Shown piece by piece: positions 4,090-51,152 of a stretch of 64,000 nucleotides of DNA (its first letter is position 1; every line of letters begins with the position of its first letter). Origin of the DNA: Eukaryota sp. TZLM1-RC (lineage: Eukaryota; Protista; Metamonada: BaSk clade); assembly GCA_040285825.1 (NCBI GenBank), contig JAUPSS010000007.1:1772689-1836688 (forward strand), given 5' to 3'. The translations under genes were made by a program, and so were the position numbers. The notes beneath the pieces are model-generated. The model was not told where the DNA came from. It was given only the letters and a program-made list of their open reading frames with translations, and made no database searches.

Positions 4090-6039
4090 TCATCTCCTCA
4101 ACAGAGCATCTGGCCAAATGTATCTTTCCGGCCACAATTCCGCTTTCTTCTTAATTTGAATATTTTTTGCAGCGGAAATATCTCTGTCATATACTATTTG
4201 ACACTCAGTACAAATACGCATTTGCCATGATCCTGCTTGAATATTCTCGGCCATGCAACAACTGGACAGTTTGCTTGTATTAAATTCACTGGTTGACAAG
4301 TGCTTCACGTCCTTTTGATAACACAACCATTTTCTGAAAGCCCTTGCTGATCCATATCGATTGACTTTTTGGCAATGAGAGGGGAAATTAGCAGAACCCA
4401 CAGCAAGATAGAGTTTATCAGGATGTCCAGCCAGCCTTTGAAATTTGTTGAGAGTCTCTCTGAACCGTCTCTCTTTTCGTCTGCGGTTATCAAATTTAAT
4501 TATTTTCCATTTCTGGCGATTACTTTCCAAATACACTTTCCTCCTGACCAAATTCCAATGGTTCAAATATTGGTTGAAATTTTGAACGGAATATTGGTTG
4601 GGAGAGTGTTTACTGGGTGAAGGTTTTGTCATGTATCTTCTGCCAGTTGGACAAGGGATAACTCCACATTGATTATCATCTAATAAGTAACCACATAATC
4701 CTGATTGTCCCAGATCAACACCAATAAGGGGCCTTTCAGGTAAAATTTCGACTGGATGTCTACCTTTTCGACGGGGCATTTTTTAGTGCCCTTTAACTGT
4801 GTTTCTCTGGTTTTTTGGGCCTCAGGGTCACTTTTCATTTCATTTTTTGATCTTCTTTTCTTTTTCGGTGGTTCATCCAGCTCATCTGTGTTTTCTGAGT
4901 CATTATTTTTACCTTCAAAGGTCAAAAGCATTTCATTACCATTAGTTTTCAATAAAATATTTTTAAATATGTTTTTTAAACTTTTTCTGTCGATATTGAA
5001 TTTTTGGTAAGGACATTGATTGAATATTCAGACATGTATTTTTGATAAACTTTGTTTTCGAAGATGATCCTGCAATAAGTGGAATTTTTTTCACAGAGTG
5101 GAAAACATGTGAAGGTACCTCATGAAATTTTGAACCTTTATGAGAAGCTAAAGGTATTATTCTAAATTTCTTCCAGCAATGCATATGAGAAAAGAAAGTG
5201 AGTAAGTATTGTGAAATTTTAAGATTAAAGAGAAAAAGCTCACCAATTTCCTTTGATGAAAAGGTGATTTTATCATGTGAGGACAGTAGGGAGGCAGTGG
5301 TAGGAAATCTTTGAAGGAGATTCAAGATAAACTTACATGCATTTAATAAAAAGAATCTTTCTCTTGAATTATTCAAATCGAAATTGATGTAGTATTCAAG
5401 AACAGAATCAACAACTACTTCCTCGGGTTGGGCTAATGGTTCATCTGGCAAAAGAGAGAGAATATTATTTGCAAAGACATTTGTTTTATCCAGGGCTCTA
5501 CAATGAGCACGAATAAAGTTTTTTGTCCAGGATTGACAAATTTTAGGTAAACTTGTCTTCACGTTAGACGCCAATTGACGAGCCCGACAAGCAAGGTAAG
5601 AAGAAAGCCCTTTTCTATTGATAAAATTACAATTCTGAGAATGCAGCCAAGCATTGAGAAAAAGATTGAATAAATTTCTGTAAGGCACTAAAGAATTTTC
5701 CCACAATGAAACAAGAGACCTGTCTTGTGGGCATTCTGGAAGAAATCCATTGTAAAAGATATGGAGTAATTGGCGTTGGCCTTTAGATGTGGATGGCTTT
5801 GGAAAAGAACCAGTGGTGATGACGGTCATAAACAGATACCATACATCCTGTTCCACTAAAGCTCTAGATGCCAACGGAAAATTTAGAAGAAAAGATTGAA
5901 GCAATAAAGAAGCTTCATGACAAATCTCGGTGACCAAAGGAAGGTCAGTCCGAATTTGTTGCACCGCTGCAGGGGTCAGCAACGAGTTCAGTGCACAAGA
6001 CCGAGTGAATACACATGACACAGAGTGGGTGTCTGTCAT
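4090..6039 (-). mobile_element. Fanzor (TnpB-like RNA-guided nuclease), family B, about 650 aa split by two frameshifts
   Basis: ORFs 4963-6039, 4680-4952 and 4090-4779 join into one protein: WED-like LKTNGNEMLLTF, RuvC-I LIGVDLG, RuvC-II SEFNTSKLSSCC, Zn finger CTEC, RuvC-III YDRDISAAKNI. Confidence 0.85.
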
Positions 6040-6289
6040 GTAGTGAGAATAAAGAACTCATCTATCAAATTTTACACTTCTCACCCTATTTTCGACTTCT
6101 GGTTGCCTGTTCTGGGAGGTTTTTAACCCTCAACTTGGTTTTGGGAGGTTTTCACTATTCCCACACTTTCCCCTCACTTCATAAACTAGGTTCTTATTTC
6201 CCTCACTTAACTTCTTTTTTCGAGCTTTAGGACTCCCCTGTAATCTTTCAACTTCTTTCTATTACTCTTTCAGTTCATACCCCACTACT

Positions 6290-6603
6290 GGCCCTCCACA
6301 AACTGCAACTTATGCTCTACCACCGACGCCTCAACCGGTACAGTCCATGTACACACCTCATGCTCCTCGCTCATCCGGTAATAATACCAGGAAAACTTTC
6401 CTTGACAGCTCTGATTGGAAGTTAAACAAAACTGTTAGTCATTCATCAAACAAAACACTTCTGTCCCTAGCGTTTCACTTGGTTTGAAGCTTTGTAATGG
6501 CATGTCGAAGGAAAATGTTAACATTGAGCTAGACGAACGAGAGTTGGAAGCCTTTTTCAATAATGTTGAAGAAGATATCTCTGTTCATTTAGACAATCTG
6601 TAA
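6290..6603 (+). pseudogene. possible COMM-domain (COMMD) protein C-terminus, frameshifted
   Basis: LDSSDWKLNKTVSHSSNKTLLS, then after a 1-nt shift SVSLGLKLCNGMSKENVNIELDERELEAFFNNVEEDISVHLDNL*, resembling the COMM domain; 5' boundary unknown. Confidence 0.3.
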
Positions 6604-6801
6604 TAAAGTAAGTTATTTTGTAAATAAATAGTTTATATTGTTTGTTGTTTATTTGAACATTATTGGCACGTTTTTATGCTAAAAAGCTCCTGAACTGATT
6701 TGGTATTGGTTTTGGGGGAGGTTTTGGGGAGAACTAAATTTTGGAATGCTAAAAACTCCATCAGTTCACTGTTTTTTTTTCGTTTTTCGTTTGGTAATTT
6801 G

Positions 6802-7560
6802 ATGAGTACAAATAGAAGGCGTTCTGTTTCGAAAACGCCTCCTAAAACAGTAGGTTCCCCATCTGTTTCCACTCATTCTTCACCATCTCTCACGTCAAAA
6901 TCGTTGTCTAGGTCTTTTTCCCCTGTTGATCTTGAACATGCTCGCTCTTCTCTATCTGAATTACAATCACTCTTAAAAAAACAAAAGCTGAAGACATCGG
7001 CTATCAGAGATCGTCTAACAAAAACGGCAACTCCCTTACGTTCTTTAGAGACCACCCACTGCGAGGACTCACTTAACAGCATTTCAACTCTCCTTTCCAA
7101 ATACAATCCTTCTTTCGTTTCCCCCAATTATACCTTAACATCTCCTCTCCGAACACCTTCTTGTCCCTCTCCGAGCCAATCACTTCCTTCCTCCTCCTCC
7201 CCAGTGTCTGGTCAGATGGATTCACTGTCTTTGCCACCTATACCTTCTTCACAACCTGACTGTCCTAAATCAAATAATGAATTTGAACCAATAGAGTCAC
7301 CAAAGCGCCGATTTTCAACAAACAGTTTTCAACCCTCATATGACGAATTGGTTTCCTTTTGTAACGGTTTGGAATGTGAGAACACCAGACTCAAACAGAA
7401 AATGACTCAAATGGCAAATAATCATTCAGAAAGCAATCAGAATCAGAACAAATTATTGAAAGCTACTTTGACTGAATTATCCTCATTAATGGACAGGATT
7501 CAATATTTAGAAAAAGAATTAAAGCGAAGTTCAGGGAGTAATGTTCATAGTCCTTGTTGA
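6802..7560 (+). CDS. Ser/Pro-rich coiled-coil protein, function unknown
   Basis: Open ORF from ATG 6802 with host-like composition and two coiled-coil-like segments. Confidence 0.6.
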   Translation: MSTNRRRSVSKTPPKTVGSPSVSTHSSPSLTSKSLSRSFSPVDLEHARSSLSELQSLLKKQKLKTSAIRDRLTKTATPLRSLETTHCEDSLNSISTLLSKYNPSFVSPNYTLTSPLRTPSCPSPSQSLPSSSSPVSGQMDSLSLPPIPSSQPDCPKSNNEFEPIESPKRRFSTNSFQPSYDELVSFCNGLECENTRLKQKMTQMANNHSESNQNQNKLLKATLTELSSLMDRIQYLEKELKRSSGSNVHSPC

Positions 7561-11040: not shown

Positions 11041-11993
11041 AAGATTTTGACGATTACGTCGTTAACAATTCTATTTAAACAATCTGTTACAGCTTGAAGT
11101 TCAACGTGAAAAAGAGTTGGTAGACATTTCTCAGCGAGATTCACTTGACATTTCGCATTCTTCTAACATCATGCAGCAAAACGAGAAAAAGAATAACAAA
11201 ATAACGGACCCGGTTTCCACCTCTTCATTCAACCTGGTCTTCTTTCCGAACTGCTCAGTTGGAAGCTTTGAAAAAAAAAACAATTGAAACCAAGTATGGT
11301 CAACAAAATTGAGCCAAGTCTTAGTGGTTTCAAGCCTGATCCTTCAATTAAGTTGAAATCTAAAACCACAAATCAAAATCTTCCTATGGTTATGAGCATT
11401 GATTTTGGAACATATCAGGATGGTGTTTTTCACCAAAACCAGAAAAATCAATTTCTCAGATTATCAACAAAAAATGAAAAGATGATTCAAATCTTTTGAA
11501 AAGAAGAAGTGCTGAACAGTTGAATGAATGGATTTCAGATCAAAAAGGGTTTTTTATTTCAATTGTTATGTTTAGGTTTGACTAACACAGTATCTTTTTG
11601 GAAAGCAAATATTCGTTACTATTGAAGATGAATTTCCAAATCACGTCTCTACATGAAATGGATATGAATGTTAAGGTAGAATTATTCTCTAACGAAGAAA
11701 CTTTGCTTCGTAGTTTTTCAAACCTTATAACAATTACCAACCACATTGTTTACCGAATCACAATTTAATCAAATTTGGATTACAAGTATTGGAAATTCGA
11801 TTTCATGAATTTAATTCAACATTTCCCACTGTTCCAAATGATCCAATGGTGGATGTATTCAATCAACTTTTCTCCAAGATGGGGAAAGGTTGTCATCAGG
11901 ATCAATTGCTTTTATCTTTCAGATACTCTGGTATTTGTCAGGAAGTTTATTAAAATCCCCTATTGATAAGGCTTAGGCAATCTGGCATATGAA

Positions 11994-14397
11994 ATGATTT
12001 GTGAAAAGAAAATCAAACTTCATCAGGAATTTACCAATATTTCACCAATTGATTGTTTGGCTACTTTTCCACTGACACAAAATTTAATTCAATATAAACT
12101 TCATGTTTTTTTCTTTGTCCGAACCTCTTCGTGCTGTTTCAAAAAGACAAGTTCATTTTGCCATCTTATAAAACCATTCGAGCAACCGTCAACTCAATGG
12201 TTCAACATTCAAATGTGATACTCAAATTGAAAGAAACTGTTCCCAAATTACAACAGTTACGAATTCATACTACATGTTGAAGTTGTATTTGAAGTCCCGA
12301 TTTGAACGTAATTTAGTACTACCACAAATATTTGCCAAACTATATCAATCACTCATGTCCAGAATTCGTTGAATTTCAGCGGAGCATTATGGGCAAAAAA
12401 TGGTAAAACCACGAAGTGCATTTTCACAGGATTTTGAAGATTTTGTTTATGGTGAAGGAGTTTATACTTTTAAAACTACCTTTGAGCAACAAAAGTTAAA
12501 CAAAACAATGAGTTATCTTGATCACTTAAGAAACAAGCCTGAACAGTTTCCACGATTTCCAACTGATGGATTCAGTAGACCACCTGAATATATGGTTCCA
12601 ATTATGTTTACTAAATTTGAGAATAATTTTAAATCAAATTATGAAAAACGTATCAATGGTTTTATTATTGTTTATTTTGACAAACCAGATGTGGAAAATG
12701 TGTTAGCAGAAGTGCACAAGCTGGGTGGAAAGTCAACGCCATTATCTACAATTATTTCATTATTTAGATTTAGGCTTCGTCAATTCAAAAACTTGTTTTT
12801 AGTTAATGAGAAAGATTGCTTGAGTTCTTTGTTTCATCATCCTGAAAATATTTCAGATCTTCTGAATGATGAATTGTTCGTGTTATGTGAATAACATGAT
12901 GTAAGAAATAATGAATTTAGAGACATATTTGAAGGTCTTATTGTGCCATTTACTTGTCAAATTGAAAATTTGGTCACTGACGAGACTTTTGTTGATAACA
13001 TATTTCCAGTGAATATGCAGTTTCTTGTAGACGCTGTTGAAAAAGATCCTCAAATATTCCTAAAACCAGCAATTACCATTGCCCAATATATCTCCTGTAG
13101 AGAGAAAAGACCTGTCATATTTCTCCTGTGTTAAGCACTGTAAGTCCTATTTTCCTATTGATACAAGAACAATATGGACAATTATGAGACAAACACTAAT
13201 TGATAATATATTATCTACATAGACGCTGAAAATGCCAAATACACTAGCCCCAATTACGATAGTCAAACCACCTCAACAATTTGAATTTAAGTCTAATATT
13301 CTCGATTTAAACCAACCAGTGTTCAAACAGAAGAGCTATACATTCAACATTATCCACACAGATGGATTCAATATTGCAGTAGAATTTGTTGTTCGTCGGG
13401 ATTTACAAGGTCAAAAATGTAAGCCAGACAACAAGGCTAGTATTTCTGATTTATATATTGATGATGTTGATGTTGATACGTTTCAAGGCAAACGAATTGT
13501 TGTTAGTGATCCTGGAAAACGTGATTTATTGTATTTTGGGAGTAAAAAAACTGATGAAGAACTAGCCAAGGTGCCTGAACATGAAACGATACAGCAAAAA
13601 ATTAGTCGGGTGATGAATCAAGACAAGGAATTTCAAATGGTTGAGAATGACTCAAATGTCCTGGTCTATGAAAAGTAGAATTAATGAAAAAGAAAAACGT
13701 TGGGCGACAAAGAATACTGAGGTAGATTACGACAGGAACCAAATGATAGAGTCTAAGGAAATGACAATCGAAGATGCTAACACCGAATTATCCGCGTTTG
13801 CTGCCAATTCAGCAACTTTTATAGATTTTTCCAACTTTGTGGTTGCCAAACTTCGGCAAGTTTTTTTTGACAATTGACTTTTACAGTCTAGACTTGAAGT
13901 ACATTCATAAAATGCAAGCTTTATTCACAAGGATAAGACTGAAAGTTGGTTGTTCACCAGTTTAACAATCCAAAAGTCACTTTAGACTAATGGGTGATTA
14001 TGGTGACAAAGGTTCCAAGAATTTGAAACAACAGAGACCTACTCGAGGCACTGGATGGATTCAATTTCTGAAAAGAAATGGATTTGAAGTATTGATGATT
14101 ACTGAAGCTTTCACTTCAGCAAAATGTCCTGTTTGTTTTGAAAAGGTTGCTACGTTTTTGAGAGTAACAAATCCCAGATGCTAGAGAAGAGAAAAGACTC
14201 CTGTTACTACATGTCATGGTTTATTAGCTTGTAACAGTGAGAGTTGCAAACACAGTAACAAAGGCTCAACCAAGCTTTTCAATAGAAATAAGCTGGCTTG
14301 TCTGAATATGTTTGCAATTGCTGAAGCTAAACAGTGGTAATGAGAGGCCTCAGTATCTGTGTAGTAGATAGTTTTTGTACCTATTTCACACGAAAAT
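11994..14397 (+). mobile_element. Fanzor family A, copy 1 (pseudogenised)
   Basis: IIHTDGFNIAVEF (WED), IVVSDPGKRDLL (RuvC-I), MGDYG, ITEAFTSAKCPVC (RuvC-II), LLACNSESC, FNRNKLACLNM (RuvC-III), ERPQYL; several stops; 5' boundary approximate. Confidence 0.85.
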
Positions 14398-14488
14398 TAA
14401 TCGTGTATTTATGGGAATTTCCCACATCAAATCACATCATTTTGTCTCACCCAATCCCTATCCTCTGAATCCTCATTTATACCTACTT

Positions 14489-16171
14489 ATGTCCATTAAT
14501 CTCATCAATTCTTCTCGTGATGTGCTCTTCTCTATACTCAGAGATGTTTCTGGGATGAAAGCCCTCCTTCTTGACCCTTATACTGTTTGTTCCACTTCTC
14601 GCTAACCGTAGTCCTCTGTTGTATCACATGTGGCTTCCCAATCAGAAATTATTGCAGAACAAGTTTTTCTTGTCAAACGTCTCTCTTCCCCCTGTTCTGA
14701 ACCACTGCACCATCTCAAAGCCCTTGTTTTCATATCCCCCACACCTGAATCTATAACTTGCCTCTGTGAAGAACTTAAACAACCAATGTTTTCTTCCTAT
14801 TCCATTGTACTAACCTCTGACCTTTCAGATGACGTCATCAAAGAGATTGCTTTGGCTGACACCTCATCAGTTGTCACTTCACTCCGTTCTTATTATCTCA
14901 ACTTTTGTCCTATTACTCCCCACACCGCTTACTCAACTCTATCACATCTTAAACTCCTCCCTTCCGAAACCTCCCAGGCCTCTTCTTTACTAACGTCATT
15001 ACTTATTGCTCTTGGATCTCCCGCCTCAATTAGGTATATTAAAGATAGCGATCTAACCCGAACTATCGCATCATCGTGTCACTCTCAGCTTCGACAACAC
15101 AAAGATTTGCTCAACAAATCTTCCCTTACCCAAGTCCTCGTAATGGATCGAAAGGAGGATCCTGTCAGCCCGGTGGTATTGCCTTGGACTTACCATGCAA
15201 TGATTGGCGAATTTAGTTCTTCATTTATCAATAACAGAGCAGTCATTAGAAAAGATGGTGAAGAAAAGGAATATGTTTTTTCCACTTTTAATGATTCTTT
15301 TTTCGAAAACCATCGCAATTCATCTTTTGGGGACGTGGGCGTTGCAACTCATGATTTAGTTTGTGAATTTTCAAAGCAGCAGTCAAGCGCAAAAGCCTTG
15401 AATTCTATAGAAGATATCCAATCATTTGTCGAATCTTTACCAGAGTTTAGAACGCAAAAAACCACAATGACCAAGCATGTGGCAATGGTTTCTTATTTAG
15501 CAAAGGTAGTTGAGGATAGAATGTTGATGGATTTGGGTGAAGTTGAACAATCTTTCTTGGCGAGTCATGGTCACTCAAATCGTGAATTGATTGATTGGCT
15601 TAAACGGTCAAAAATCTCTGACAATGATAAGCTTCGGTTATTGGTAATGTTGAACATCAAGGATCCAAGTTTTGAATTACCAACTGAAATTTCCGAGTCT
15701 TGTCCATTTTTGGTGACTGCAAACGACAAAATTAAGTCTTTCATTTCAAATCGGCAATTGGATTTATTTAAATCCAGAAATTTGCTAGCAAAAGCTCATT
15801 CGGTGGTGAGGAAGCAAGTTAAAGGAGTTGCTAATGTGTATGCTCAGTATCAACCAATGATTGCTAATTTAGTTGACCAAGTTAGAAATAGAAACTTAAA
15901 GGAATCTGTTTGGCCTTTTGTTGATGGACAGCATTCAACTGAAAAACCTTCAATATTGGTTGTACTCATAGTGGGTGGTATTTCTTTATTAGAAGCCCAA
16001 TACATTGAGGAATTCAATTCTCAGAATAATGGGTTTCAGATAATACTTGTAGGTACTAGTCTGTTGAATAGCAAATCATTTTTAGAGTCCATTGTACAAC
16101 CTGATTCTTCTTCAGGGCCACTCTCTCTTGCTCATGGTGCTATTAATAAGATGTTTTCGTTCTTTAGCTGA
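14489..16171 (+). CDS. VPS45: Sec1/Munc18-family protein VPS45; intron 14585-14611
   Basis: GMKALLLD exon 1 spliced in frame over a 27-nt GT..CTAAC..AG intron; HLKALVFISPT, DRKEDPVSP..PWTYHAMIGE, KGVANVYAQYQP. Confidence 0.9.
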
Positions 16172-16467
16172 AAATTGTAAATGGTGTTGTTATAAATTAT
16201 ACTTCCTTTTGTTTTGAAATGTTACATAGGTTGCTACTTGTTAATAACTTTGGTGTTTTTCAGTCCAAGCAACGGTGTTTCCTCAAATTCATTCCAAGAA
16301 TTCGTAAATAAAACAACAAGGTTATCCTATTCTAAAATTGATTCGAGGAATAGAGACTGAAATACTTTGTTGAGTATGTTGGTTTTGGTAGAAGTTGAAG
16401 TAAGTGGAGGTAGTTCCAATACCAATAGAGGTGATCAATATTCAACACCAAATTGGGTTTCATTACC

Positions 16468-17249
16468 ATTAAAAAAAGGTGTGTGCGAGAACAAGTCATC
16501 AGATTCTTCACTATTTGTCACCATCGTGCCACGAAAGTTTGGGCAATGTGCTTATAATGACGATTTTGTAACAAAAATGAGATTATATCTGAATAACCCT
16601 ATTAACCAACTTCAACGAAACGTGTATTTGTTCGAATTCACCTCAGCTCACTTTGCGTCATGCTTTAAATTGTCCCAAATTGGTAACTTATCGTTCTTCA
16701 TTACATGATGCTGTTAGAGACACTGTTTTCAATATTGCACAAGCTGCAAGAATATCGTGTATCAAAGAGCTTCTGCTGAAGGAAACACTGTCTCTGAATA
16801 ATTTTGGTTCTGATGATAGAGGTGATGTATACTGTGATTGGATTGATAACTCGAAGCTATTGTTGTCTTTGCCTCATGTAATGTTGCAAATGACACTTTG
16901 GTTCAAAGCATGGAACTTAATCCTGTAATAGCTCTCGAATATAAAGCCAAAGAAAAACATAGAAAATATGATAAAGATATTGAAGCTAATGCCGATAGAA
17001 ATACACCACTGGTATTTATTGCTTTTCCATTTTCGATAAACTGAAAACTATCAGTAGAAGCAGTAACTTTTTTGATTGATTTCCAAGAAATGGTTCAAAA
17101 ACAGCAATGAACAGAGTTGTTGTGTTTTTGTGGTGGTCACATATTTAATTTGCCATAATTAATAGATTACCTCGGTTCGTTTATCGAATAAGAGAAGCAA
17201 TGGCAAGAAAACAAGCAGGTCAGGATTTTCTAGAGGAAATCTTGGTTCA
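16468..17249 (+). mobile_element. CRE-like non-LTR retrotransposon 3' fragment (family F2)
   Basis: Nucleotide match to 18882-20354; DDRGDVYCDWID RLE motif; decayed. Confidence 0.85.
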
Positions 17250-17347
17250 TTGGATCACTTAGGTCAGATTGAATTTGATAAAGCAGGAAATCTCCCACTT
17301 CCAAAAAACTCAGTTTCTCCACCTATTCCATTGTTATATCTGTCAGC

Positions 17348-18224: not shown

Positions 18225-18345
18225 CTTCGAAAAAACTCGACTTTTTGACCAGCATCAGATTTGCGGATTGTCGCTTTTTACGGAATTTCTGTTCCAAATT
18301 CCCGAAAACACACAGTCTATTTTCGTGTGTAAAAATACAAAAACT
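18225..18345 (-). ncRNA. candidate omegaRNA scaffold of Fanzor A
   Basis: 3' of the stop; hairpins ACACAC..GTGTGT and GGAATTT-ggaacag-AAATTCC; first about 25 nt similar to copy 1. Confidence 0.4.
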
Positions 18346-18881
18346 ATCTGCTAGACAGATACTGAGGTCTTTCATTACCACTCATTCTGGCTTCAGCGAT
18401 TGCAGACACATTCAGACACGCCAGCTTATTTCTACTGAAAAGCTTTGTTGAGCCTTTGTTACTGTGTTTGCAACTCTCACTGTTACAAGCTAATAAACCA
18501 TGCCATGTAGTAACAGGATTTTTTCTTATATAGAATGTGGGATTTGTTACTCTCAAAAACGTAGCAACTTTTTCAAAACAAACAGCACATTTGGTTGAAG
18601 TGAAACCTTCATTAATCATCAATACTTCAAATCCTTTCCTTTTCAGTAATTGAATCCATTCAATGCATCGAGTAGGTCTCTGATGTTTTAAGTTCTTCGA
18701 ACCTTTTTTTTGCCATAATCACCCATTGGTATTACAGTGTCTTTTGGATTATCAAATTGGTGGACAAGCTTTTTGAACAACCAACTTTCAGTCTTTTGCT
18801 TGTGAATAAAGTTTGCATTTTATGAATGCTCCACAAGTCAAAACTGTAACAGTCAATTGTCAAAAAAACTTACCGAAGTAT

Positions 18882-20354
18882 TTATTGAATTTGCACACTT
18901 GATTAAATTAAATCATAACTAATGGGACGACTATCATTAAACCAAGATTTCCTCTACAAAATCTTGATTTGCTTGCTGTCTAGCTAAAGCTTCTCTAATT
19001 CGATTGAAAAACCGCGGTAATCTATTAATAATGGCAAATTGAATCCGTGAACGCCATAAAAAAATATCAAATCTTTTCATTGTTTTTTCTTTCACCATTT
19101 TTTGGAAGTCTTCCAAAAAAGTTTCTGCTTCAACTGATAATCTTCCATTTATCGAAAATGGGAAAGCAATAAAAACCAGCTGTGTATTTCTATCGACATT
19201 TGCATCTTCAATTTCTTTATCATATTTTCTATGTTTTTCTTTTGCTTTAAAATCCAGAGCAGCCACAGGATTAAGTTTTCTTCTGTGAACCAAAGTATCG
19301 TTTGCAATATTACATGAGACAAAGTCAACAATAGCTTCAGAATTATAAATCCAATCACAGTATACATCACCTCTATCATCAGAACCAAAATTATTCAGAG
19401 AAAGTGTTTCCTTAGGCAGGGGCTCTTTGATACACGATATCCTTGCAGTTTGTGCCATATTGAAAACAGTGTCTCTAACAGCATCATGTAATGAAGAACG
19501 ATAAGTTATCATTTTAGAGCAATTTAGAGCATGGCGCAAAGTGAGTTGAGGTGAATTCGAACAAATACATTTTTCTTTTGATAATAATTGGTTAATGGGG
19601 ATGTTCAAATATAATCTCATTTTTGTTACAAATGCTTCATTAGTGGCACACAATCCAAATCTTTGTGGTACAATGGTTACAAAAAGTGAAGAATCTGACG
19701 CCTTGTTTTCACAAACACCCTTTTCCAATAACAATGAGTGAAGATCTTGATTTAAAACAGCCGAGCTGCAAATATTATTATAAAGATCTGTTTCATACAT
19801 TCCAGTCAATCTTTTCTGTAATGTTCGAAGAGTGTACTTCAAATTTAAAACATTTTTTTCTGGAATATTGCCATTGAATGATTGGGGAAAACATCGACCC
19901 CATTTTTCCACATCAATTCTTGAAATTTCTTCATTTAATGCAAAAACAGTGGAACTTTGCGTTGTCATCAATAAATCTTCCCAATCTGCAAATCTTTCGG
20001 AAAACTCAAAGATTGCATTTCTGCATCCACCAACAAAAGCACACGAGGTAAGAATAGAAGCCTTCGTCCACCCTAAACCACCATAATGTGGACTAAGGTA
20101 AGCATGATCTGGAATTTGAAACATTTTACATCCCAGTAATTGAGACAGAACTTTTGCACGTAACTCATTAAACTTTTGAGCCAAAGGTCTAGTGACAAGA
20201 GGATTTGTAGATCGAAATATATGATTAAAATTGGAACTAAAACACAGTCCTATAATGGTAAATTTGATGTGTTTTTTTATATCTAAATTCATCATTCGGT
20301 CAATTTTGTCAGAAATTGAGTTCAACTTTTCAAACAATTTTTTGGTAATTTCAT
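18882..20354 (-). mobile_element. CRE-like RLE non-LTR retrotransposon (F2), 5'-truncated, 9-bp TSD
   Basis: 466-aa open frame with GGLG thumb, CICS..HALNC knuckle and RGD..D..K RLE; CCGAAGTAT duplicated at 18873-18881 and 20355-20363. Confidence 0.92.
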
Positions 20355-21420
20355 CCGAAGTATGGTAACCACAAAGTTAAAAATATCTATAAAAGTTGCT
20401 GAATTGGCAGCAAACGCGGATAATTCGGTGTTTGCATCTTCAATTGCCATTCCGTTAGACTCTATCATCTGGTTCCTGTCGTAATCTACCTCAGTATATT
20501 TTGTCGCCCATCGTTTCTGTTTTTCATTCAGCCTACTTTTCAAAGACCAGGACCTCTGAGTCATTCTCAACCATTTGAATTTCTTGTCTTGACTCATCAC
20601 CCGACTATTTCTTTGCTGTTCAGTTTCAGTCTTTTTACTCCCAAAATACAATAAATCACGTTTTCCAGGATCACAAACAACAATTCGTTTGCCTTGAAAA
20701 GTATCAACATCACCATCATCAATATATAAATCAGAAACACTAGCCTTTTTGTCTGGCTTACATTTCTGACCTTGTAAATCCTGACGAACAAATTCTACTG
20801 CAATGTTAAATTCATCTGTGTGAATAATGTTGTTGATTTTATAGCTCTTCTTTTTGAACATTGGTTGATTTTAATCAAGAACATTAGACCAAAATTGAAA
20901 TTTCTCAGGTGGTTTGAATCTATGAACTTGGGCTAGTGTATTGACCATTTTTAATTTCTGATCAGGCAACAAATCGTCTATCAATGTTTGTTTAATAATC
21001 CTTCATATTGTTCTTGTATCAATAGGAAAATATCCAGGACCTACAGTGGTTGAAACAAGAGAAATATGATATGTTTTTTTCTCTCTACTGGAGAGATATT
21101 GGGCAATTTTAATTACTGGTATTAGGAATATGTGAGGATCTTTTTCAACAGCGTTTGCAAGAAAATGTACATCCACTGGAAATATGTTATCAACTAAATT
21201 CTCGTCAGTGACCAAATTCTCAATTTGACAAGTAAATGGCTCAAAAAGACCTTCAAAGATGTCTCTCAAATCGTTATTTTTTGCATCATGTTGTTCACAT
21301 AAATCAAAAAATTCATCATTCAGAAGGTCTGACATATTTTCAGGATGATGAAACAAAGAACTCAAGCAATCTTTATCATCAACTAAAAACAAGTTTTTGA
21401 ATTGACGAAGCCTAAATCTA

Positions 21421-33414: not shown

Positions 33415-33542
33415 TGTTGTACTGTGGACAATTAGTCTAGTATAGACTTCACTAGTGACGGCCTTTATAAGGGCCAGTGAAATTTAATAAATACCTTTAT
33501 CTTTTATCTCTATTCTGTACAATGTCTAACCATACAGCATCA
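33415..33542 (+). repeat. 3' LTR
   Basis: Direct repeat of 26733-26860, followed by ATAT. Confidence 0.95.
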
Positions 33543-33922
33543 ATATAAAAGCAAGAATCCAGCAAAGATATGAAACCTTTTGATTGCCCCTCTCATAGAA
33601 TACAATTTGCAAACATGTGAATGATGTGATCAAAAATGCATGCACCTTGAATGAAAAGACAGATTAAAGGACAAACAGGAAACGCCAAATCAGAGATGTC
33701 AACGTGTTTGGGCTCTTTTTCCCATTCAAGGTAGTTTATCCAAGAATAGATGCTGTAGTAAAAGAATCCAATGAGATTGTACACTTGAAAATGAAAATCG
33801 AAAGATAATCCATCAACACTCTTCCGACAATAGTTGAGAAATATTTGGGGGTAAAAAGAGAAAGACCAGGAAGTGAAATAACCGACACCAAGGAAATTTA
33901 TAGCAGTCCTGTCAAGAGTCAT
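33543..33922 (-). pseudogene. CTNS: cystinosin (PQ-loop) 5' part
   Basis: GYFTSWSFSFYPQIFLNYCRKSVDGLSFDF, and FYERGNQKVS in a shifted frame up to the LTR. Confidence 0.8.
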
Positions 33923-34194
33923 TGTTAGATTGAGTGGTTTCTATTTAAAGATTAAAGAAGTGTCAAGTTGGTCACATTATGAAAATAAACTTTATGTGAA
34001 CTCATTGAAACAACACGTTTCCTTGATTGCATATGCTAATGTTATCACCTAAAAAAACATTTTCAACTGTAACCGTATCAAGAAAGAAAATAGTTGCGGC
34101 AGCTTGAGTATTACGTATTATAGTGTTTAATTATCATTTTGTTCAGGCTTTGTATTTGTATAGATGTAAGAAGTTGTAAATAAATAAAATTTTT

Positions 34195-34905
34195 ATTGTT
34201 TTTTTTTCCCAAAACTGGAATATTTATTGAGATAAAAAAACCCATCTAGAATTCAATATCCTCCAAACAAGCGTCACTATTACTGAACCTACTCACAGCA
34301 TTACGTTCATATTCTACACCAATAGCTAAAAGTGCCTTTGAAATCATTGTTGGAATAGACTTGAAAAAGCAAAAAACAATTCTATTTATCCAGAAAGTGG
34401 AGTTCATTGTTTTACCAGACCTATTCAGTAACACTTTTTTAAAATTTTCAAAAAGTGCAACCCTGAAAGTCCAATATTGCCAAAAAGAGAAATTGCAAAC
34501 AGCACAAACTGATATTTCACATGTTCCACTCTACCTAACTGTGCCAAAGGCTCTTCACATTTTTTTATCTTCTTTTTTTCGGCATTAGATAACGGCGAAT
34601 CAGCGGAATACACTAAACGAGCAGCAGAATTTTTGCAAACATCAACTGAGACAACATCTACAACATTGAGAACACCATCGATCCCTGGAGCTACTAAATC
34701 TGCCCTTCTTTTACCAAAGGAATCATCCGTTTGATCTGAAGACAGCTTACGTACTAGTGGCTCAATAAATGCCTCTATATTGAAACTTTTGCACATGGCA
34801 TATAATTGATCACGAACTGAGTCATGAACAATTGAGCGATAAGTTATAAAATACTTACAGTTTAAAATATGGGAAAGCGTAACAACACTCTTGCAGCGAC
34901 AAATT
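34195..34905 (-). mobile_element. CRE-like non-LTR retrotransposon 3' fragment (family F3)
   Basis: CRC..HILNC, KRRADLVAPG..D..K RLE, 3' UTR with A-run; near-identical to 63340-63870. Confidence 0.88.
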
Positions 34906-36494
34906 ATATTTTTATTGTTGTCTGTCTGATCTTTTCTCGACTGACGTATTCACCCCAATGGTAAATCCAGAGTTGCCACGTCGAGGGCGTGTACTCCCCT
35001 GGGAGGTTAACCGTCGTGAGCAACCAATAAACGACAGCAAGACGACAGTTCCAGCAAGTGCTGCTCAGTTCTTCTCTACTGCAGCTCTTATTTCTATGGA
35101 AAAACAGTTTCGCTATATTCGAACTGTCACTGTGCTTGCTGTCCGGTTAGCACAGCTGTTTGTCCTGCAATATCCGGAAATGGCTTTCTGGTTATATCAA
35201 CAACAGTTTTGGTATCAATGCCAAGACTTTGTAATGATATTTCATCCGACTGTGAGACGCCCATTCGAGAATCATATGGGAGTGTATTGCGCACTCTATG
35301 ATGTCTCTTTCCGACCTGGCAGGACGTTTCCTCCTATTGGCTTTCAGAAGGGAACCGACAAGTGGTGCCGCTCTGATATTAGAAGCTTTCGCGCACTGCA
35401 AATGGCGAACAGCTTTTGTCAAATACTTACTGATGGCCCTGTCTCCTGGAAGCTGAACTTCTTCCGGACAATGGCTACCTTCTTTGAGTGCTCTTGCCCA
35501 AAGAAATATGCTTCATTAGTGGTGAACACAACTGCAGCCACTATTTCTGACTCTCTGCGTGCATGGTATAATGAAGGTCACCATAAGTACATAATGTACC
35601 TATTTACTCAGCAGGTTGCCGACCCTCATCGTTTTGACGCTATGTTGATCTCAATCCAGACAACATCACCTTCTTATTCGCTGCTGGGCTAAATGTTTTA
35701 TCCTTTCTGGAAAATATTGCATCTGACACCATGCGAAGAAATGCCGTATCCCCATCCCCCAGTTATTCTCCTGACTTCATCTCTTTTAGTCAAAAACTGG
35801 AAAAGCATTTTCTCTCTTTTAATGCCAACCACTGTCTACTGAAAGATCCTTTTGCTTTTTTCAGAAAAAAGAAGTATCTGACTTACACAATCAGTTCAGA
35901 TGCTGTTTCAATCCGCTTCACTTTTTTTGCCCCCAAAAAAATAAGAATCGCCGGAGAGCCAGAAAATTGGCAACCAGCCAGTGGGGAACTCGATATTCCT
36001 GCAAAGAGTCGAAAGCGAAACTCTAGACTTCAACAACAGGTTCATCCTAGGCAACGTCGAAGAACTGACGACGGCTATGAGCCTCCACCAGTTGACCCAA
36101 TTGATTATTCATACTGTGCAATTGATACCAACCACAAAAATTTGTGGGTATTCAATTGGATCAAGAATTGATAATAACAATGTGAACCATCAACTTTTGG
36201 GCCTTGTTCTGAATCCAAAGGCAAGGAAGATCATTCAACCACCGGTCTTGACCCATGCATCACCAAATTGCTATTTCGTACAGAATTTCCGCGAATATCT
36301 GTAAGAAATAGCAACGCCTTTGATGTGGGTCCACAGGAAGAAATCAGCATTCCCGACTTCCGTCCGAGAACTTTATTAGACCAACTGCTGATAAATGGAG
36401 ATCGCCGAGCCCTGCGCCGCTACAAGTCTGATTTCTTTATAAGAAGGAAAAAAAGAATAATGAGATTTGTTGAAAAAAAAACTAATGGCTAATT

Positions 36495-36535
36495 TTTTTT
36501 GAAACTGGAATATTTATTGAGATAAAAAAACCCAT
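36495..36535 (-). mobile_element. about 40-bp 3' tip of an F3 retrotransposon inserted in Fanzor C
   Basis: Matches 34212-34245; absent from copy 2 (50325-50345); CTAAT on both sides. Confidence 0.8.
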
Positions 36536-36885
36536 CTAATGGAAGAGAAACCATAATTTGGTTTGGCAGTGGAGCTGATGGAACCTCAAGACAGGCTGTG
36601 AAAACCCCAAGGAAGCGCCTTTTCAAGGAGATTCAAAAACATTTTACATATGTGAAGCCTAATGGTGATGAATTCTCCACATCTGCCAAAACGAATTGCT
36701 GTAAGGTATTCAATCAAAAGTTGTATCACGATGATGGGAGGGTGAACAATGATAAGTTTGTATGCCCTCAATGTCAGACACTCTGGTCGAGGGACATCTC
36801 AGCCTCCAGAAACCAACTGGAGATTGCCATAAGTGAGCACTACTACAATGAAAGACCGGAGGCGTTCCAGAGACCCCATAGATAA

Positions 36886-37029
36886 GTGTTTTTTTATGTA
36901 TTGCGTACCTGTACGCATATTGCGATGTTGCTGCTTTAACTATCATTTGATCGTGACACCATATGGTGATAGAACTAAAGTAAGCTTAACGTCTATCAAG
37001 ATTGCATGAATTGGTCAAAAGCCAGAAGT
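36886..37029 (+). ncRNA. candidate omegaRNA scaffold of Fanzor C (copy 1)
   Basis: About 145-nt non-coding tail highly conserved with 49841-49984; hairpins TGCGTA-cctg-TACGCA and CTATCA...TGATAG. Confidence 0.6.
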
Positions 37030-37339
37030 ACATTTTGATAGAAACTTACAGTTACAGTTTGGTCTTTCACTTTGCACTACGTTGCGTCACAATTCACTTT
37101 ATCTCACAAGCTGAATCACTTCATCTTTCCAAGACTAGTCCACGAATCGGTCTAGCTTGCTAATGTAGGCTCAGTGGACCTGTTTAAGTGCAAAGACAAT
37201 TCTTCCTCTCTACTTCGAACATCTTTTTATAGATTTTCGTTCGAGAATTTTGTCTCGGAAATTTTTAGCCAAAAATGTACACCAGGATCAGCTGTGCAAC
37301 ATGATATTCACATAAGCTGTTTTGTTTGTTAAATATATA

Positions 37340-38295
37340 TTTTTGTTCCAACTCTTACAAAACATTAAAAAAAGTAGAACTCAATATCCTCAATACACGC
37401 ATCATCATCATCAAATCTCTTAAGCGCGCGATTTTCTACTCTATTCCTAACTGTATCAGTGTTTTTGCAGATATTTCTCGCATTGCTTCGAGAATATTTA
37501 AAACAATTCTATTGTGCCAAAAATTGAAGTTCAATTCTTTTCCTGCTCTTATTAAACTTCTGAAGCCTTCGAGAAATTTAGTGCCAGATATTCCAATGTT
37601 ACTAAAACAAGAAACATCAAATGGAACCAGATGATACTTTACATGCTCAACACGTACTAGCTGAGATAAGGGTTCGTTGTTCTTTTTGATTTTGCTGTTT
37701 TCAGCAAAGCAAAACGGAGTTTCATATTTGTTAGCAATATGAAATGCTGAATCCTTACAAACAACAACAGTGACAACATCAACAACTTTGATTGTTAGCC
37801 TTGGATAATATTTATAATAGTTTATTTATAGTTTATTAATAGTTATTGTATTATTGCGCTTAAGTTAAGGGAAATCCTCATTCCCTTGTAATAAATTACA
37901 TTTAAGGTATACCCAATGTCTAACCCCCACAGATCATCAATACGTATTGATGATCTGCGGGTGTTATGACGGGACATGACCTTATATGAAAAGTAGAGTA
38001 ATTTATTACAAGGGAATGAGGATTTCCCTTAACTTAAGCGCATGGGCGCAATAATACAATAACTATTAATAAACTATAAATAAACTATTATAAATATTAT
38101 CCAAGGCTAACAATCAAAGTTGTTGATGTTGTCACTGTTGTTGTTTGTAAGGATTCAGCATTTCATATTGCTAACAAATATGAAACTCCGTTTTGCTTTG
38201 CTGACACACCATCAGACCCAGGTGTAATTAAATCAGCACGGCATTTCCCAAAAGTATTTTCATCTTCATTTTCGGGTGACAATTTACGCACAAGT
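37340..38295 (-). mobile_element. CRE-like retrotransposon 3' fragment (family F6), interrupted by the foldback
   Basis: RADLITPGSDGV (38205-38245) continues as IKVVDVVTV..ENSKIKK (37792 downward). Confidence 0.75.
37701..38204. repeat. 504-bp foldback: two tail-to-tail LTR-like units (37793-37939 and 37948-38112) plus 92-bp inverted flanks
   Basis: Arms are reverse complements around ATACGTAT; each unit runs TGTTAGCC...CAGATCATCA. Confidence 0.9.
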
Positions 38296-38354
38296 GGTTT
38301 TGTTTGCCGACCTCCAAAAGGGGTTGTTGTGGCAGATAGAAACCAGACAGAAAC

Positions 38355-38640
38355 AGACATCTTGTTTTTATTGCTTTCCCATTTTCGATAAACGGAAGAC
38401 TATCAGTAGAAGCAGGAACTTTTTTGAATAATTTCCAAATGAATGGTTCAAGAAAAAATAAACATTTTTTAAAAGATAAATAAAAAACAAAGAACAATGA
38501 CAAAATTTGATATTTGTTTATTGCGCTCTCGGATTCAATTTGCCATAAATAATAGATTACTTCGGTTTTTCAATCGAATTGGAGAAGCTTTAGCTAGACA
38601 GCCAGCAGATCAAGCAGGAACTTTTGTAAATAATTTCCAA
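38355..38640 (+). mobile_element. rearranged F2 retrotransposon 3' fragments
   Basis: LVFIAFPFSINGRLSVEA and RSRIQFAINNRL match 18937-19200. Confidence 0.75.
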
Positions 38641-38940
38641 AAAATTAAAAAATGGAAATGTCGTTTTCTGAAGTATCTCAAGGCTCGATTTCCAACCGTG
38701 AAGAATGGTGATGAATACTATAGATCTGCCAAAGTGAGCTGTTGCAAAGTTTTCCATGAAGACCTTTACTTCATAGAGAATGGAGAAAGGAAAAAGTCTA
38801 AAGCCTATTTTGCATGTCCAGAATGTGGGATGGTTTGGTCAAGAGATACATCTGCATCGAGAAACCAGTGGGAGATTGCAGTAAGCGAGTACTGTTTGAA
38901 CACACTAGACCCCTACCTTTTAGAAGACCTCAATAAAAGT
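38640..38940 (+). mobile_element. Fanzor C-related subfamily, C-terminal fragment
   Basis: NGDEYYRSAKVSCC, CPEC, WSRDTSASRNQWEIAVSEY; shifted end TRPLPFRRPQ*. Confidence 0.8.
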
Positions 38941-39662
38941 CTTCAAATCCAACGTATTTTGATCTAAGCCAATCATCTCCGCATGGTTAAGTTTAGACAT
39001 GTGGGTGGATGTGGTTGAAGTATTGGAAATTGATATTTCCGATGAAGAATGCATTTCTGGTGAAAACTTACCCCAACAGGTAGATATTGAACTCTTAAGG
39101 GCCGACAAGTCTTGCGTACAACTGTGATGCAAATCAGTGACTTGATACGGTTGTTTATGTTCATAGACTCAATGGATTCAATGAACAACAGTACTGTTAT
39201 GCTAACCGAAACAGACATTCTTAGTTCTGCCATTGTTTTCTGTATTTATTTAAACTAAAAAGTGGTTCACAGTTGCACGTTCAAACACTTTTAAGGAGTG
39301 GAAGATTTTGTTATTGATAGTGTCTTCTTTAAACCTTCATATACCTTGGCTCTTTGGAGATATACTGATCTATCTTTACAATAAACTAAGAAGTGGTTCA
39401 AAGTCACACCTTCAAACATTGCAAAGCCATTCAATTTATTTATTGAATATACATTTTTCTGATTGACTGTACATCCCAATTAAGTATAAAGAACTAGAGG
39501 TAGAGTTGTCCAAGAAGGTGGAGAAGGGTGAGGAATGAAGTTGTGTGGTAAAGGTGTATTGAAAATTAACAGTATGTGTTCAAATATAAAACTACAACCT
39601 TTACCTTAATATGATACAAAACAAGCTATTCACAGTAATTACAATGCTAAATACAATTCAAA

Positions 39663-49400: not shown

Positions 49401-49644
49401 TTTTACAGATATTGTCTAGCAATGAAGTAAGTGTCCGTTACACTGATGTGGAGGGTCTGAATTTTGTTAACTGTCTGTGGTTTTCATTTGAATTGCATAC
49501 TTTCTTCAAGCATCATTCAAACTTATTCCAAGAACTTTCATCCTTGGTGAGATCGTCCACAGACGTTCTAGAATCGTCGAATAATATTGCCCACCAATCT
49601 CAGTGAGCCCATCTCTCCTCTAGAACAATACGTAGCTTTGAAGC

Positions 49645-49757
49645 TAGTTTCTTTGCGGTCTCTGGAACGCTTCTGGTCTTGTTCCATAGTAGTGCTCACT
49701 AATTGGAATTTCTAGCTGATTTAGTGATGCAGAAATGTATCTAGACCAAACTTCTGA
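49645..49757 (-). mobile_element. tiny Fanzor C C-terminal remnant
   Basis: EVWSRYISASLNQLEIPISEHYYGTRPEAFQRPQRN*. Confidence 0.7.
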
Positions 49758-49817
49758 GTTCTATATATTTGGTTAAGTGCACGACTTGTAGTTGACATTG
49801 AATGGGAAAATGCTACT

Positions 49818-51152
49818 ACTGTGAATTTCTATGAAAACGCACTTCTGGCTTTTGACCAATTCATGCAATCTTGATAGACGTTAAGCTTACTTTAGTTCTA
49901 TCACTATATGATATCTCGATCAAATGATAGTTAAAGCAGCAACATAACAATATGCGTACAGGTACGCAATACATGGAAAAGCACTTATCTACGGGGGTCT
50001 CTGGAACGCCTCCGGTCTTTCATTGTATCAGTGCTCACTTATGGCAATCTCAAGCTGGTTTCTGGAGGCTGAGATGTCCCTCGACCAGAGTGTCTGACAT
50101 TGAGGGCAAACAAACTTTTCATTGTTCACCCTCCCATCATCGTGATACACCTTTTGATTGAATACCTTACAGCAATTTGTTTTGGCAGATGTGTAGAATT
50201 CATCTCCATTAGGCTTCACATATGTAAAATGTTTCTAAATCTCCTTCAAAAGGCGCTTCCTTGGGGTTTTCACAGCCTGTCTTGAGGTTCCATCAGCTCC
50301 ACTGCCAAACCAAATTATGCTTTCTCTTCCATTAGCCATTAGTTTAATTATTTCAATAAATCCCATTATTCTTTTTTGCCTTCTTATAAAGTAATCAAAC
50401 TTGTTGCGGCGCAGGACTCGGCGATCTCCATTTATCAGGAGTTGGTCTAGTATAGTTTTCGGATGGAAGCCGGTATTTTTGATTTCTTCATGTGTCGGTA
50501 CCCAAAGGCAATGCTATTTCATTAAGATATTTGTGCAAATTCTTAGCAAAATAGCAATCTGGTGGTGCATGGGTCAAGACCGGTGGTTGAATGATCTTCT
50601 TTGCCTTTGGATTTAGACCAAATTCCGAAAGTTGATGGTCAACATTGTTATTATCTATTCTTGATCCAATTGAATAACCACACAAATTTTTGTAGTTGGG
50701 ATCAATTGCACAGTATGAATAATCAATTGGGTCAACTGGTGGAGGCTCATAGGCGTCGTCAGTTCTTCGACGTTGCCTAGGATGAACCTGTTGTTGAAGT
50801 CTAGAGTTTCGCTTTCGACTCTTTGCAGGAATATCGAGTTCCCCACTGGCTATGGTGGTTGCCAATTTTCTGGCTCTCCGGCGATTTTTCGTTTTTTTGG
50901 AGGCAAAGGAAAATATGAAGCGGATTGAAACAGCATCTGAACTTATTGTGCAAGTCAGATACTTCTTTTTCTGGAAAAGGCAAACGGGTCTTTCAGCAGA
51001 CAGTGGTTCGTATTAAAAGAGATACAATGCTTTTCCAGTTTTGACTACAAGAGATAAAGCCAAAAGAATAACTGGGGGATGGGCACACGGCATTTCTTCG
51101 CATGGTATGAGATGCAATACTTTCTAGAAAGGATACAATATTTAGCCCAGCA
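49818..51152 (-). mobile_element. Fanzor family C, copy 2 (5'-truncated) with 3' tail
   Basis: Homologous to 35682-37052; CAIDPN, GDEFYTSAKTNCC, CPQC, WSRDISASRNQ. Confidence 0.87.
49841..49984 (-). ncRNA. candidate omegaRNA scaffold of Fanzor C (copy 2)
   Basis: Conserved with 36886-37029. Confidence 0.6.

Follow-up and report, generated by a model that had tools for sequence, protein, structure and literature searches.

The question raised by a 64,000-nt stretch of DNA (the window) of the metamonad protist Skoliomonas litria TZLM1-RC (assembly GCA_040285825.1, contig JAUPSS010000007.1) is what the Fanzor-like loci crowded in it are, whether any of them can still work, and how they came to lie where they do. 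Fanzors belong to the TnpB superfamily, occur in eukaryotes and have a RuvC nuclease that is split by a zinc ribbon. No other native RNA-guided DNA nuclease is known in eukaryotes, and what Fanzors do in nature is not yet clear. The S. litria genome comprises 31.9 Mb with 35.8% GC and 55.4% repeats, was sequenced at 206x with Illumina reads, and is described in a paper in which Fanzor goes unmentioned (PMC11316075). Metamonads go unmentioned in the Fanzor papers that we searched.

We identified seven Fanzor-derived segments of three families (A, B and C), spanning positions 3815-51158, among ordinary eukaryotic host genes (AP-mu, WD40, Sec1, Dus, RapGAP and a CH-domain protein, by Pfam). In our judgement it is probable that these are Fanzor1-type families of which all window copies are dead; on this reading the elements would have been moved in trans, their 3' tail would be an omegaRNA scaffold, and they would settle preferentially upstream of host genes. 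Multi-copy, transposase-free Fanzors as such are already known; what is new is genus-restricted Fanzor1 families that show an exonuclease fusion combined with Asn in RuvC-III, a 3' terminus in common, and a siting before co-oriented genes.

Fanzor1-type loci in the window

Searching the window by tblastn with Skoliomonas Fanzor proteins gave matches at 4034-6177 (-), 11133-11243 and 12400-14331 (+), 18347-18878 and 20325-21428 (-), 35042-36882 (+), 38506-38904 (+), 49647-49757 (-) and 49995-51157 (-), and no Fanzor match in the window beyond the loci named in a preliminary description made from the letters alone. The Pfam family Cas12f1-like_TNB (PF07282) scored above its curated cut-off in the B copy (29.2 bits) and in the two main C copies, C1 (26.4) and C2 (30.3), slightly below it in an open reading frame (ORF) at 38497-38967 (25.4 bits), and weakly in family A (17 bits). 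Self-BLAST of the window aligned the two A copies, A1 and A2, at 85% identity and C1 with C2 at 87%, and aligned no family with another at the nucleotide level. Because tblastn, PF07282 and self-BLAST agree with the loci first named, the Fanzor observation is confirmed: all of these loci derive from TnpB/Fanzor genes, and the three families are separate at the nucleotide level, but B and C are related as proteins and share a 3' motif. The loci stand where they had been placed, but they extend further than described (B to 3815-6191, C1 to 33972-34200 plus 34908-37052, and A1 back to at least 11132). Plain Fanzors of 600-800 aa had been proposed, which does not hold for family A, an exonuclease-Fanzor fusion with a RuvC-III Asn; the intact paralogues of B and C measure 592-651 aa. 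Such natural intact paralogues were used in place of consensus or repaired proteins.

Family A is tied to Fanzor1 by sequence. A profile of its C-terminal third, compared with solved structures, found SpuFz1 (8GKH) with an E value of 6.9e-9; protein P0115 of this family matched PpFz1 at 2e-16, and family-A C-terminal proteins matched SpuFz1 at 1e-9. Furthermore, the Cys/His ligands of the family-A zinc ribbon align with those of PpFz1 despite the low PF07282 score. Profile (E 1.4e-9) and tblastn (E 2e-12) comparisons link B with C, and A is weakly related to both (hhalign probability 81%). The alignment profiles of B and of C each found no solved structure, and the joint B and C profile found zinc-ribbon matches only (Cas12m, TranC and TnpB, E 3e-4 to 6e-3).

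For the B and C lineage the assignment comes from predicted fold. P0051 is an intact natural C-type protein of 592 aa from the sister isolate TZLM3-RCL, with an AlphaFold model of mean predicted local distance difference test (pLDDT) score 67; like P0012 and P0038, it exceeds the PF07282 cut-off. A Foldseek search with this model ranked SpuFz, PpFz and GtFz at the top (E 1.9e-12 to 2.3e-7), with all others at 3e-3 or worse. VIA-align gave Z scores of 18.4 for GtFz, 16.4-17.4 for SpuFz and 16.5-17.1 for PpFz over 442-483 residues, against 10-12 for Cas12, TnpB and Fanzor2 (Cas12o next best at 11.8, TnpB 10.2, ApmFz2 10.1). The structure search that the preliminary description had called for thus matches this intact C-type protein to the Fanzor1 fold at Z 16-18. 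As to a Fanzor2 or IS607-type origin, no TnpA serine recombinase was found in or near the elements, and the fold match to ApmFz2 was weak (Foldseek E 0.2, Z 10.1).

The active-site motifs agree with this assignment. The RuvC-I Asp lies in GVDLGQS in B, in AIDTNH or AIDPNY in C and in VSDPGKR in A, and is near-invariant in the B and C alignments. In Fanzors the RuvC-II site is rearranged, the canonical Glu being replaced by Gly or Pro and an alternative Glu lying about 45 residues downstream, as described by Jiang et al. (PMC10530073). All three families have this rearrangement, in the form LAVGSAN ... TSEFNTS in B, VWFGNGG ... GDEFxTS in the C type and LILMGDYG ... INEAFTS in A, where the strand aligns with VVMGDWS ... 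LLDEYKTS of SpuFz; the spacing is 32-38 residues, and the alternative Glu precedes the TS..CC motif of the zinc ribbon. The RD of RuvC-III is present in B (YDRDISAAKNI) and C (WSRDISASRNQ), as in the WNRD of SpuFz1 and PpFz1. B and C consequently retain the whole Fanzor catalytic pattern of RuvC-I Asp, RuvC-II Gly, alternative Glu and RuvC-III RD, and NLS-like (nuclear localization signal) basic runs occur in the Skoliomonas proteins. We conclude that the window loci are of Fanzor1 type, judged by sequence for family A and by predicted fold for a C-type relative.

Family A departs from this pattern at one catalytic residue. The RuvC-III Asp is Asn in all four copies examined (FNRN in A1, FSRN in A2, and NRN in P0115 and P0126), as against WNRD in PpFz1 and SpuFz1, and family A is thus a Fanzor1 homologue whose RuvC site is probably inactive. 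Copy A1 (11132-14433, +) consists of a PolB-type exonuclease remnant at about 11284-12218, a Fanzor1 part at 12400-14331 and a hairpin-bearing 3' tail that runs to about 14433. It is 80-84% identical to the related locus L004 (window 11261-13098 aligns with L004:1244-3094), where the ORF matching the A1 upstream region carries DNA_pol_B_exo1 (PF03104, E 1.7e-9).

Single-gene elements with fixed ends

Elements of families B and C are about 2.4 kb long and have a single gene and fixed 5' and 3' ends. The B unit of 2,377 bp is defined by three copies with unrelated flanks (in the window and at loci L001 and L002). It begins with ACCTAGTTTATG, continues through a 152-nt leader, one ORF and a tail of about 270 nt, and closes with GTGAAATTCACAG. 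The window copy at 3815-6191 (-), with its 5' leader at 6040-6191, ORF remnants at 4090-6039 and 3' non-coding tail at 3815-4089, is 95.3-95.4% identical over 2.38 kb to L001 and L002, with 95.7% also given for L001, which encodes the intact 651-aa S. litria protein P0012. The C unit measures 2.37 kb and ends with GAAATTCACA(G), as in B; C1 is 89% identical, in two blocks, to L005:3233-5554. A more distant C-type family, seen at L006, ends with GTGAAATTCTCAG, and a 2,613-bp C-type element of TZLM3-RCL, present in four copies that are 95-98% identical, ends with ...GAAAAACACAGA. The 3' end GAAATTCACAG, a terminal motif of 11-14 nt, is common to B and C; in the exact form GAAATTCACAGTAG it lies at 3814-3827 and occurs a second time as the end of C2. 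The B terminus is also kept in a relative from Skoliomonas sp. GEM-RC1.

The B tail is better conserved than the gene. Nucleotide identity between S. litria and GEM-RC1 is 80% in the tail and 67% in the coding region, the tail folds more stably than shuffled sequence (z = -2.7), and five predicted base pairs are preserved by compensatory double changes. The subterminal hairpin at 3819-3857 (-) has a perfect 12-bp stem and a 15-nt loop, with the element end about 2 nt beyond it (repeat search). Such conservation, measured against one divergent sequence, is what an omegaRNA scaffold or a right end would look like, and in our model the conserved 3' tail would serve both as the omegaRNA scaffold and as the cis-acting right end. 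Intact copies would then supply a Fanzor-omegaRNA complex that cuts sites lacking the element, as has been shown for TnpB and other Fanzors.

No transposase is encoded inside B or C elements, whose 2.4 kb hold one ORF, as had been noted at the outset; the lack of a transposase in Fanzor loci is not new (PMC10432273, PMC3627910, PMC10530073). The repeat search found no terminal inverted repeats linking the ends of B, C or the TZLM3 element, and the three full-length B copies have no target-site duplication. Because the elements lack terminal inverted repeats, a DDE origin (MULE, hAT or Mariner) is disfavoured. A MULE-type transposase gene (PF10551, PF00872, SWIM) lies at L002:8698-9667, about 2.8 kb downstream of a B copy and outside the element. 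Copies with unrelated flanks show transposition to new sites and not homing alone, and the elements would be non-autonomous, moved in trans by an enzyme encoded elsewhere. A Helitron2-like mechanism and copying by retroelements are two candidate routes of movement.

It is a tentative possibility that the elements are non-autonomous rolling-circle transposons of the Helitron2-like (HUH) kind that carry only Fanzor1, as CRe-1/2/3 do. Consistent with this, they have fixed ends without terminal inverted repeats, a subterminal 3' hairpin, and full-length copies without target-site duplication, while truncated copies keep the 3' end (C2, 38506-38904, 49647-49757 and L006:637-1334). Moreover, a 7-9-bp duplication, ATGCCTA(AA), brackets the L011 copy, whose 5' end is 12 nt short, and a duplication around a truncated copy is the CRe pattern (PMC3627910). 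This duplication is, however, a single case, the termini are not of the TC...CTRR form, and neither asymmetric terminal inverted repeats nor a 5' hairpin appeared in the repeat search of B, C and the TZLM3 element. No RepHel gene was seen, and the genome was not scanned for RepHel.

Position relative to host genes

Placement was tallied at loci fetched for other reasons, for the 14 copies in which the 500 nt downstream include a gene that is annotated or has Pfam support. The next downstream gene was co-oriented in 12 of the 14 copies and convergent in the other 2 (one-sided binomial probability 0.0065). At L011 the RtcB start codon directly follows the element end (0 nt), at L008 the ATG of PDCD2_C lies 4 nt past it, and at L012 there are 47 nt before the annotated start. 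L012 also has an ATG 1 nt past its element, but since that ATG is not in frame with the annotated gene it was not counted as start-codon abutment. Within the window, the WD40 gene (2567-3748, -; Pfam WD40 and beta-propeller) is co-oriented with B and has its first ATG about 66 nt downstream of the B 3' end. The Sec1-family gene (14489-16171, +; Pfam Sec1, E 4.6e-76) is co-oriented with A1 and starts 55-75 nt past its 3' end. A 69-aa ORF with its ATG at 49400, co-oriented with the C-type stub at 49647-49757, has a terminus-like GAAAACCACAG about 76 nt before that ATG.

The elements would accordingly seem to prefer sites directly upstream of host genes in the same orientation, the young copies of the sister isolate lying right at the start codon. 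The stronger claim, that Skoliomonas Fanzor1 elements choose gene starts, inserting or homing directly upstream of the host start codon in the orientation of the gene, we regard as doubtful.

It is likewise improbable that there is no targeting at all, either because only upstream co-oriented insertions survive in a compact, repeat-rich genome or because GAAATTCACAG is a host promoter element. The window gaps of 55-76 nt and the small sample fit this explanation, as does a near-exact copy of the motif upstream of Dus that has no Fanzor body. Nevertheless, the motif is missing upstream of the AP-mu, RapGAP and 796-aa ORF genes, and it marks the point where homology between copies stops. The young TZLM3-RCL copies, 95-98% identical and with intact ORFs, already lie 0 and 4 nt from start codons. 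Furthermore, all four young TZLM3-RCL copies have a co-oriented downstream gene, a strand bias that selection alone does not predict.

The motif upstream of Dus, GAAAATCACAGTAG at 25415-25428 (-), lies 61 nt from the start codon, and no homology to a Fanzor body or tail was found next to this motif, which may be the end of a solo or 'ghost' element. A general role of GAAATTCACAG as a host promoter motif was considered and set aside on the three upstream regions that lack it, although one copy without a body lies upstream of Dus. The 796-aa ORF (60031-62421, -) has internal tandem repeats (60191-60713) and no Pfam match.

Retroelements at the Fanzor loci

5'-truncated fragments of one non-LTR (non-long terminal repeat) retroelement family, with a 466-aa ORF and a restriction-endonuclease-like C-terminal part, occur at 16460-17252, 18879-20355, 38346-38614, 51432-51972, 63868-64000 and L005:8308-9389, and lie within or adjoining four Fanzor loci. 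A second family of retroelement fragments is present at 34200-34908 (in the C1 leader), 54824-55179 and 63352-63871. The only RNA gene found in the window, tRNA-Thr(AGT) at 55242-55314 (+), is preceded by the fragment 54824-55179, which stops 63 nt upstream of it. Between Dus and C1 lies a Ty3-like LTR retrotransposon (26730-33545, +) with open gag, protease-reverse transcriptase and RNaseH-integrase ORFs (27098-33414) and short matching ends at 26730-26863 and 33412-33545.

The abundance of non-LTR retroelements with a restriction-like endonuclease bears on a route, in our view distinctly unlikely, in which the Fanzor elements spread as RNA and were copied in trans by them, in the manner of short interspersed elements or retrocopies. 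Some copies are 5'-truncated with intact 3' ends, the ORF is intronless, and fragments of one retroelement family lie in or beside four Fanzor loci; Fanzor1c has also been reported in association with long interspersed elements (PMC10530073). Flanking duplications are variable: besides the 7-9 bp at L011, the family-C copy at L005 is flanked by a 10-bp direct repeat, GAAAATGACC (3214-3223 and 5569-5578), 9 and 14 nt from its ends, and the 3' spacer after the element end is an A-run (AAATCAAAAAAAAA), which resembles a retroposition footprint. Most copies, however, have no poly(A) or simple-repeat tail, the three full-length B copies lack a target-site duplication, and the elements have no clear 3' end in common with the retroelement. 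A 3' end shared with the nested retroelement family was considered and rejected, the likeness being a loose one of GTGCAAATTCA to GTGAAATTCA.

Decay of the window copies

The window holds no intact copy. Each copy is a pseudogene, two with retroelement insertions (A2 and C1), and the working 'system' of the preliminary description is not found there. The B copy, elsewhere described as possibly intact, has lost 5 bp near 5030 and 1 bp near 4785 (A7 to A6), deletions which shift 82 codons out of frame and bring a stop at 4963. A1 contains several frameshifts and stops, and at least four frame changes would be needed to read through it.

A2 (18283-21423, -) is A-derived at 18296-18879 and 20355-21423, 85% identical to A1 in two blocks and matched by tblastn. 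The intervening 1.5 kb is a 5'-truncated non-LTR retroelement fragment with a 466-aa ORF (18879-20355, -), which breaks the homology between A1 and A2. On the 5' side of A2, a detached family-A upstream piece at 22614-22812 (-) is 89% identical to L004:453-651, upstream of the L004 exonuclease ORF. Two overlapping Cys/His-rich ORFs of 130 and 202 aa, without a significant Pfam match, lie at 21543-22483 (+) between A2 and this piece.

C1 (33972-37052, +) comprises element sequence at 33972-34200 and 34908-37052, with coding remnants at 35042-36882 and a tail at 36886-37052; its remnants are 40-45% identical to the annotated proteins P0080 (589 aa) and P0079 (612 aa) by tblastn. The interruption in its 5' leader is a 0.7-kb retroelement fragment (34200-34908, -); L005 does not have it, and it matches 54824-55179 and 63352-63871 at 97-99% identity. 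Directly downstream of C1 a 504-nt segment (37701-38204) forms a long palindrome, matching its own reverse complement at 89% identity. C2 (49818-51158, -) is 5'-truncated but keeps its 3' end intact (...GAAATTCACAG); its identity is 87% with C1 and 91% with L005. Both C1 and C2 require at least four frame changes each for read-through.

Two stubs represent two further C-type subfamilies. The first, at 38506-38904 (+), is a 3' fragment of another C-type Fanzor, 44-54% identical to C-type proteins (tblastn; PF07282 25.4 bits). It forms part of the 156-aa ORF 38497-38967 (+), in which a retroelement tail (38346-38614), repeating the C-terminus of the 466-aa retroelement ORF at the N-terminus of the new frame, is joined in frame to a C-type zinc-ribbon and RuvC-III end; this is probably a chance chimera from nested insertion. 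The second, at 49647-49757 (-) between C2 and the 69-aa ORF, is a 37-aa C-terminal stub, 84% identical to the C-terminus of P0082 (tblastn).

A working, possibly domesticated multi-gene Fanzor system, with copy B intact and the frameshifts due to assembly errors or introns, is very improbable. B does retain all catalytic motifs, and its two indels total 6 bp, one of them in an A-run. Yet a 5-bp deletion that puts 82 codons out of frame and ends in a stop at 4963 is not a homopolymer error, the assembly is a 206x Illumina one (PMC11316075), and no intron is expected since the intact paralogue is a single uninterrupted ORF. The remaining copies are full of frameshifts, truncations or nested retroelements.

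One host intron could be deduced. The Sec1 frame is restored by removing 27 nt at 14585-14611 (+), of the form GTTTGT...CTAAC..TAG, the N-terminal exon being read from the sequence, which suggests that S. litria introns are very short with a yeast-like branch site. The possibility that an element is a giant intron, from GTGAGG near the 5' end to the terminal CAG, was judged unlikely, the sole host intron deduced being of 27 nt.

Distribution in Skoliomonas

Clustering at 90% identity groups family B with 82 members, annotated fragments of family A number at least 43 (66-87% identity), and C-type proteins fall into several subfamilies across TZLM1-RC, GEM-RC1 and TZLM3-RCL. The TZLM3-RCL C-type cluster has eight 592-aa members, of which four loci were fetched; L008 and L011 translate to intact proteins. 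A HMMER profile scan of 1.84 billion representative proteins gave 27 matches, of which the traced ones all come from the three Skoliomonas assemblies, with a profile that covered 579 of 651 positions and dropped the C-terminal columns, so that distant TnpB relatives recognizable by the most conserved region were beyond its reach. All word-index matches came from the same three assemblies, and pattern scans of JGI metagenomes and IMG/VR returned no relatives. HMMER, word-index and pattern scans thus found no B or C relatives outside the three Skoliomonas genomes, and, as first suggested, the families look lineage-specific and, for B and C, genus-restricted.

Giant viruses enter the comparison through fold. 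The P0051 model matches giant-virus Fanzor-like proteins with E down to 2e-15; these viral neighbours are 570-880-aa 'transposase' or TNB-domain proteins, and a language-model search led to the same giant-virus protein clusters, which carry PF07282 and DUF8286. That the loci are prokaryotic TnpB or giant-virus insertions, through contamination or recent transfer, is scarcely credible, for although many Nucleocytoviricota proteins are among the closest neighbours by language model and by fold, the copies stand amid ordinary eukaryotic genes of a 3.2-Mb contig, many loci occur in three related genomes, the proteins have NLS-like basic runs, the copies are old enough to have diverged by 5-15%, and no viral or metagenomic relatives were recovered from JGI metagenomes or IMG/VR.

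Comparison with known systems

The solved Fanzor1 proteins (SpuFz1 of Spizellomyces punctatus, PpFz1 of Parasitella parasitica and GtFz1 of Guillardia theta) have a fold like that of the C-type model, at Z 16-18, and share with the Skoliomonas proteins the rearranged RuvC-II, a CCxC-type zinc ribbon, a (W)xRD RuvC-III, a length of 590-650 aa and a basic NLS-like run. B and C differ from them in standing at only 11-13% identity in structural alignments and being missed by profile searches, and family A in its RuvC-III Asn and upstream PolB-type 3'-5' exonuclease domain.

Chlamydomonas Fanzor1-only non-autonomous Helitron2 elements have been published (PMC3627910, PMC10530073). These elements, CRe-1/2/3 (CrFNuc) of Chlamydomonas reinhardtii (Bao and Jurka 2013; Jiang et al. 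2023), likewise have a single Fanzor1 gene, no transposase and several multi-copy families, together with a 3' hairpin, conservation of the 3' non-coding region, copies that have lost 5' sequence but retain the 3' end, and a duplication in a truncated copy only. In contrast, neither a Helitron partner nor a 5' hairpin nor asymmetric terminal repeats were found in Skoliomonas, where the ORFs are intronless, the ends are ACCTAG... and ...GAAATTCACAG, and copies lie upstream of co-oriented genes.

Transposase-free loci have been published for Spu-1, GtFz1, NlovFz2 and MmeFz2 (PMC10432273). These loci (Saito et al. 2023) resemble ours in being multi-copy, with no transposase between their ends, in the proposed action in trans, and in 'ghost' loci that keep the RNA part only. 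The Skoliomonas elements lack the inverted repeats of Spu-1, and form at least three families with hundreds of fragments in a 31.9-Mb genome. With TnpB and omegaRNA of the IS200/IS605 family (ISDra2) they have in common the RuvC and zinc-ribbon core, a guide scaffold expected at the 3' end of the gene and the right end of the element, a subterminal hairpin, and the lack of both inverted repeats and target-site duplication. They differ from ISDra2 in having no TnpA, a eukaryotic host, a larger protein, a rearranged RuvC-II and a weaker fold match (Z about 10).

Several points weigh against our interpretation as a whole. By sequence, B and C reach solved structures through the zinc ribbon only, with E values no better than 3e-4. 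For P0012, the intact B protein, the model was poor (AlphaFold pLDDT 52, below 50 in the RuvC half, from a 13-sequence alignment) and was kept out of the fold search, and for this reason the placement of B in Fanzor1 relies on its homology to the C type. The covariation in the B tail derives from one divergent sequence. Few loci enter the placement tally, which is built on gene models, several of them without Pfam support, and the gaps to the next ATG in the window are not the 0-4 nt of the young copies. Finally, the omegaRNA, transcription and nuclease activity are inferences, and movement in trans is a proposal.

Implications

Skoliomonas adds a deep-branching host group to the Fanzors. The two very divergent Fanzor1 families, B and C, offer intact natural proteins of 592-651 aa with defined 3' tails, which are testable as compact editors, and the exonuclease fusion and RuvC-III Asn of family A hint at a Fanzor whose use is to bind under RNA guidance and so bring in a different nuclease. 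Furthermore, the three related genomes, with their hundreds of copies of several ages, amount to an unusually large natural experiment, from which the way in which Fanzor elements move without a transposase of their own could be learnt.

The bias toward co-oriented genes, if it withstands a census, bears on the use of Fanzor to the element and on promoter rewiring. If the elements do choose gene starts, the guide, which is the sequence after the omegaRNA scaffold, would consist of the first codons of the host gene, and the 3' end of the element would become the upstream control region of that gene. If, in addition, the choice of site were RNA-guided, these elements would show that guides can direct transposon placement naturally in a eukaryote.

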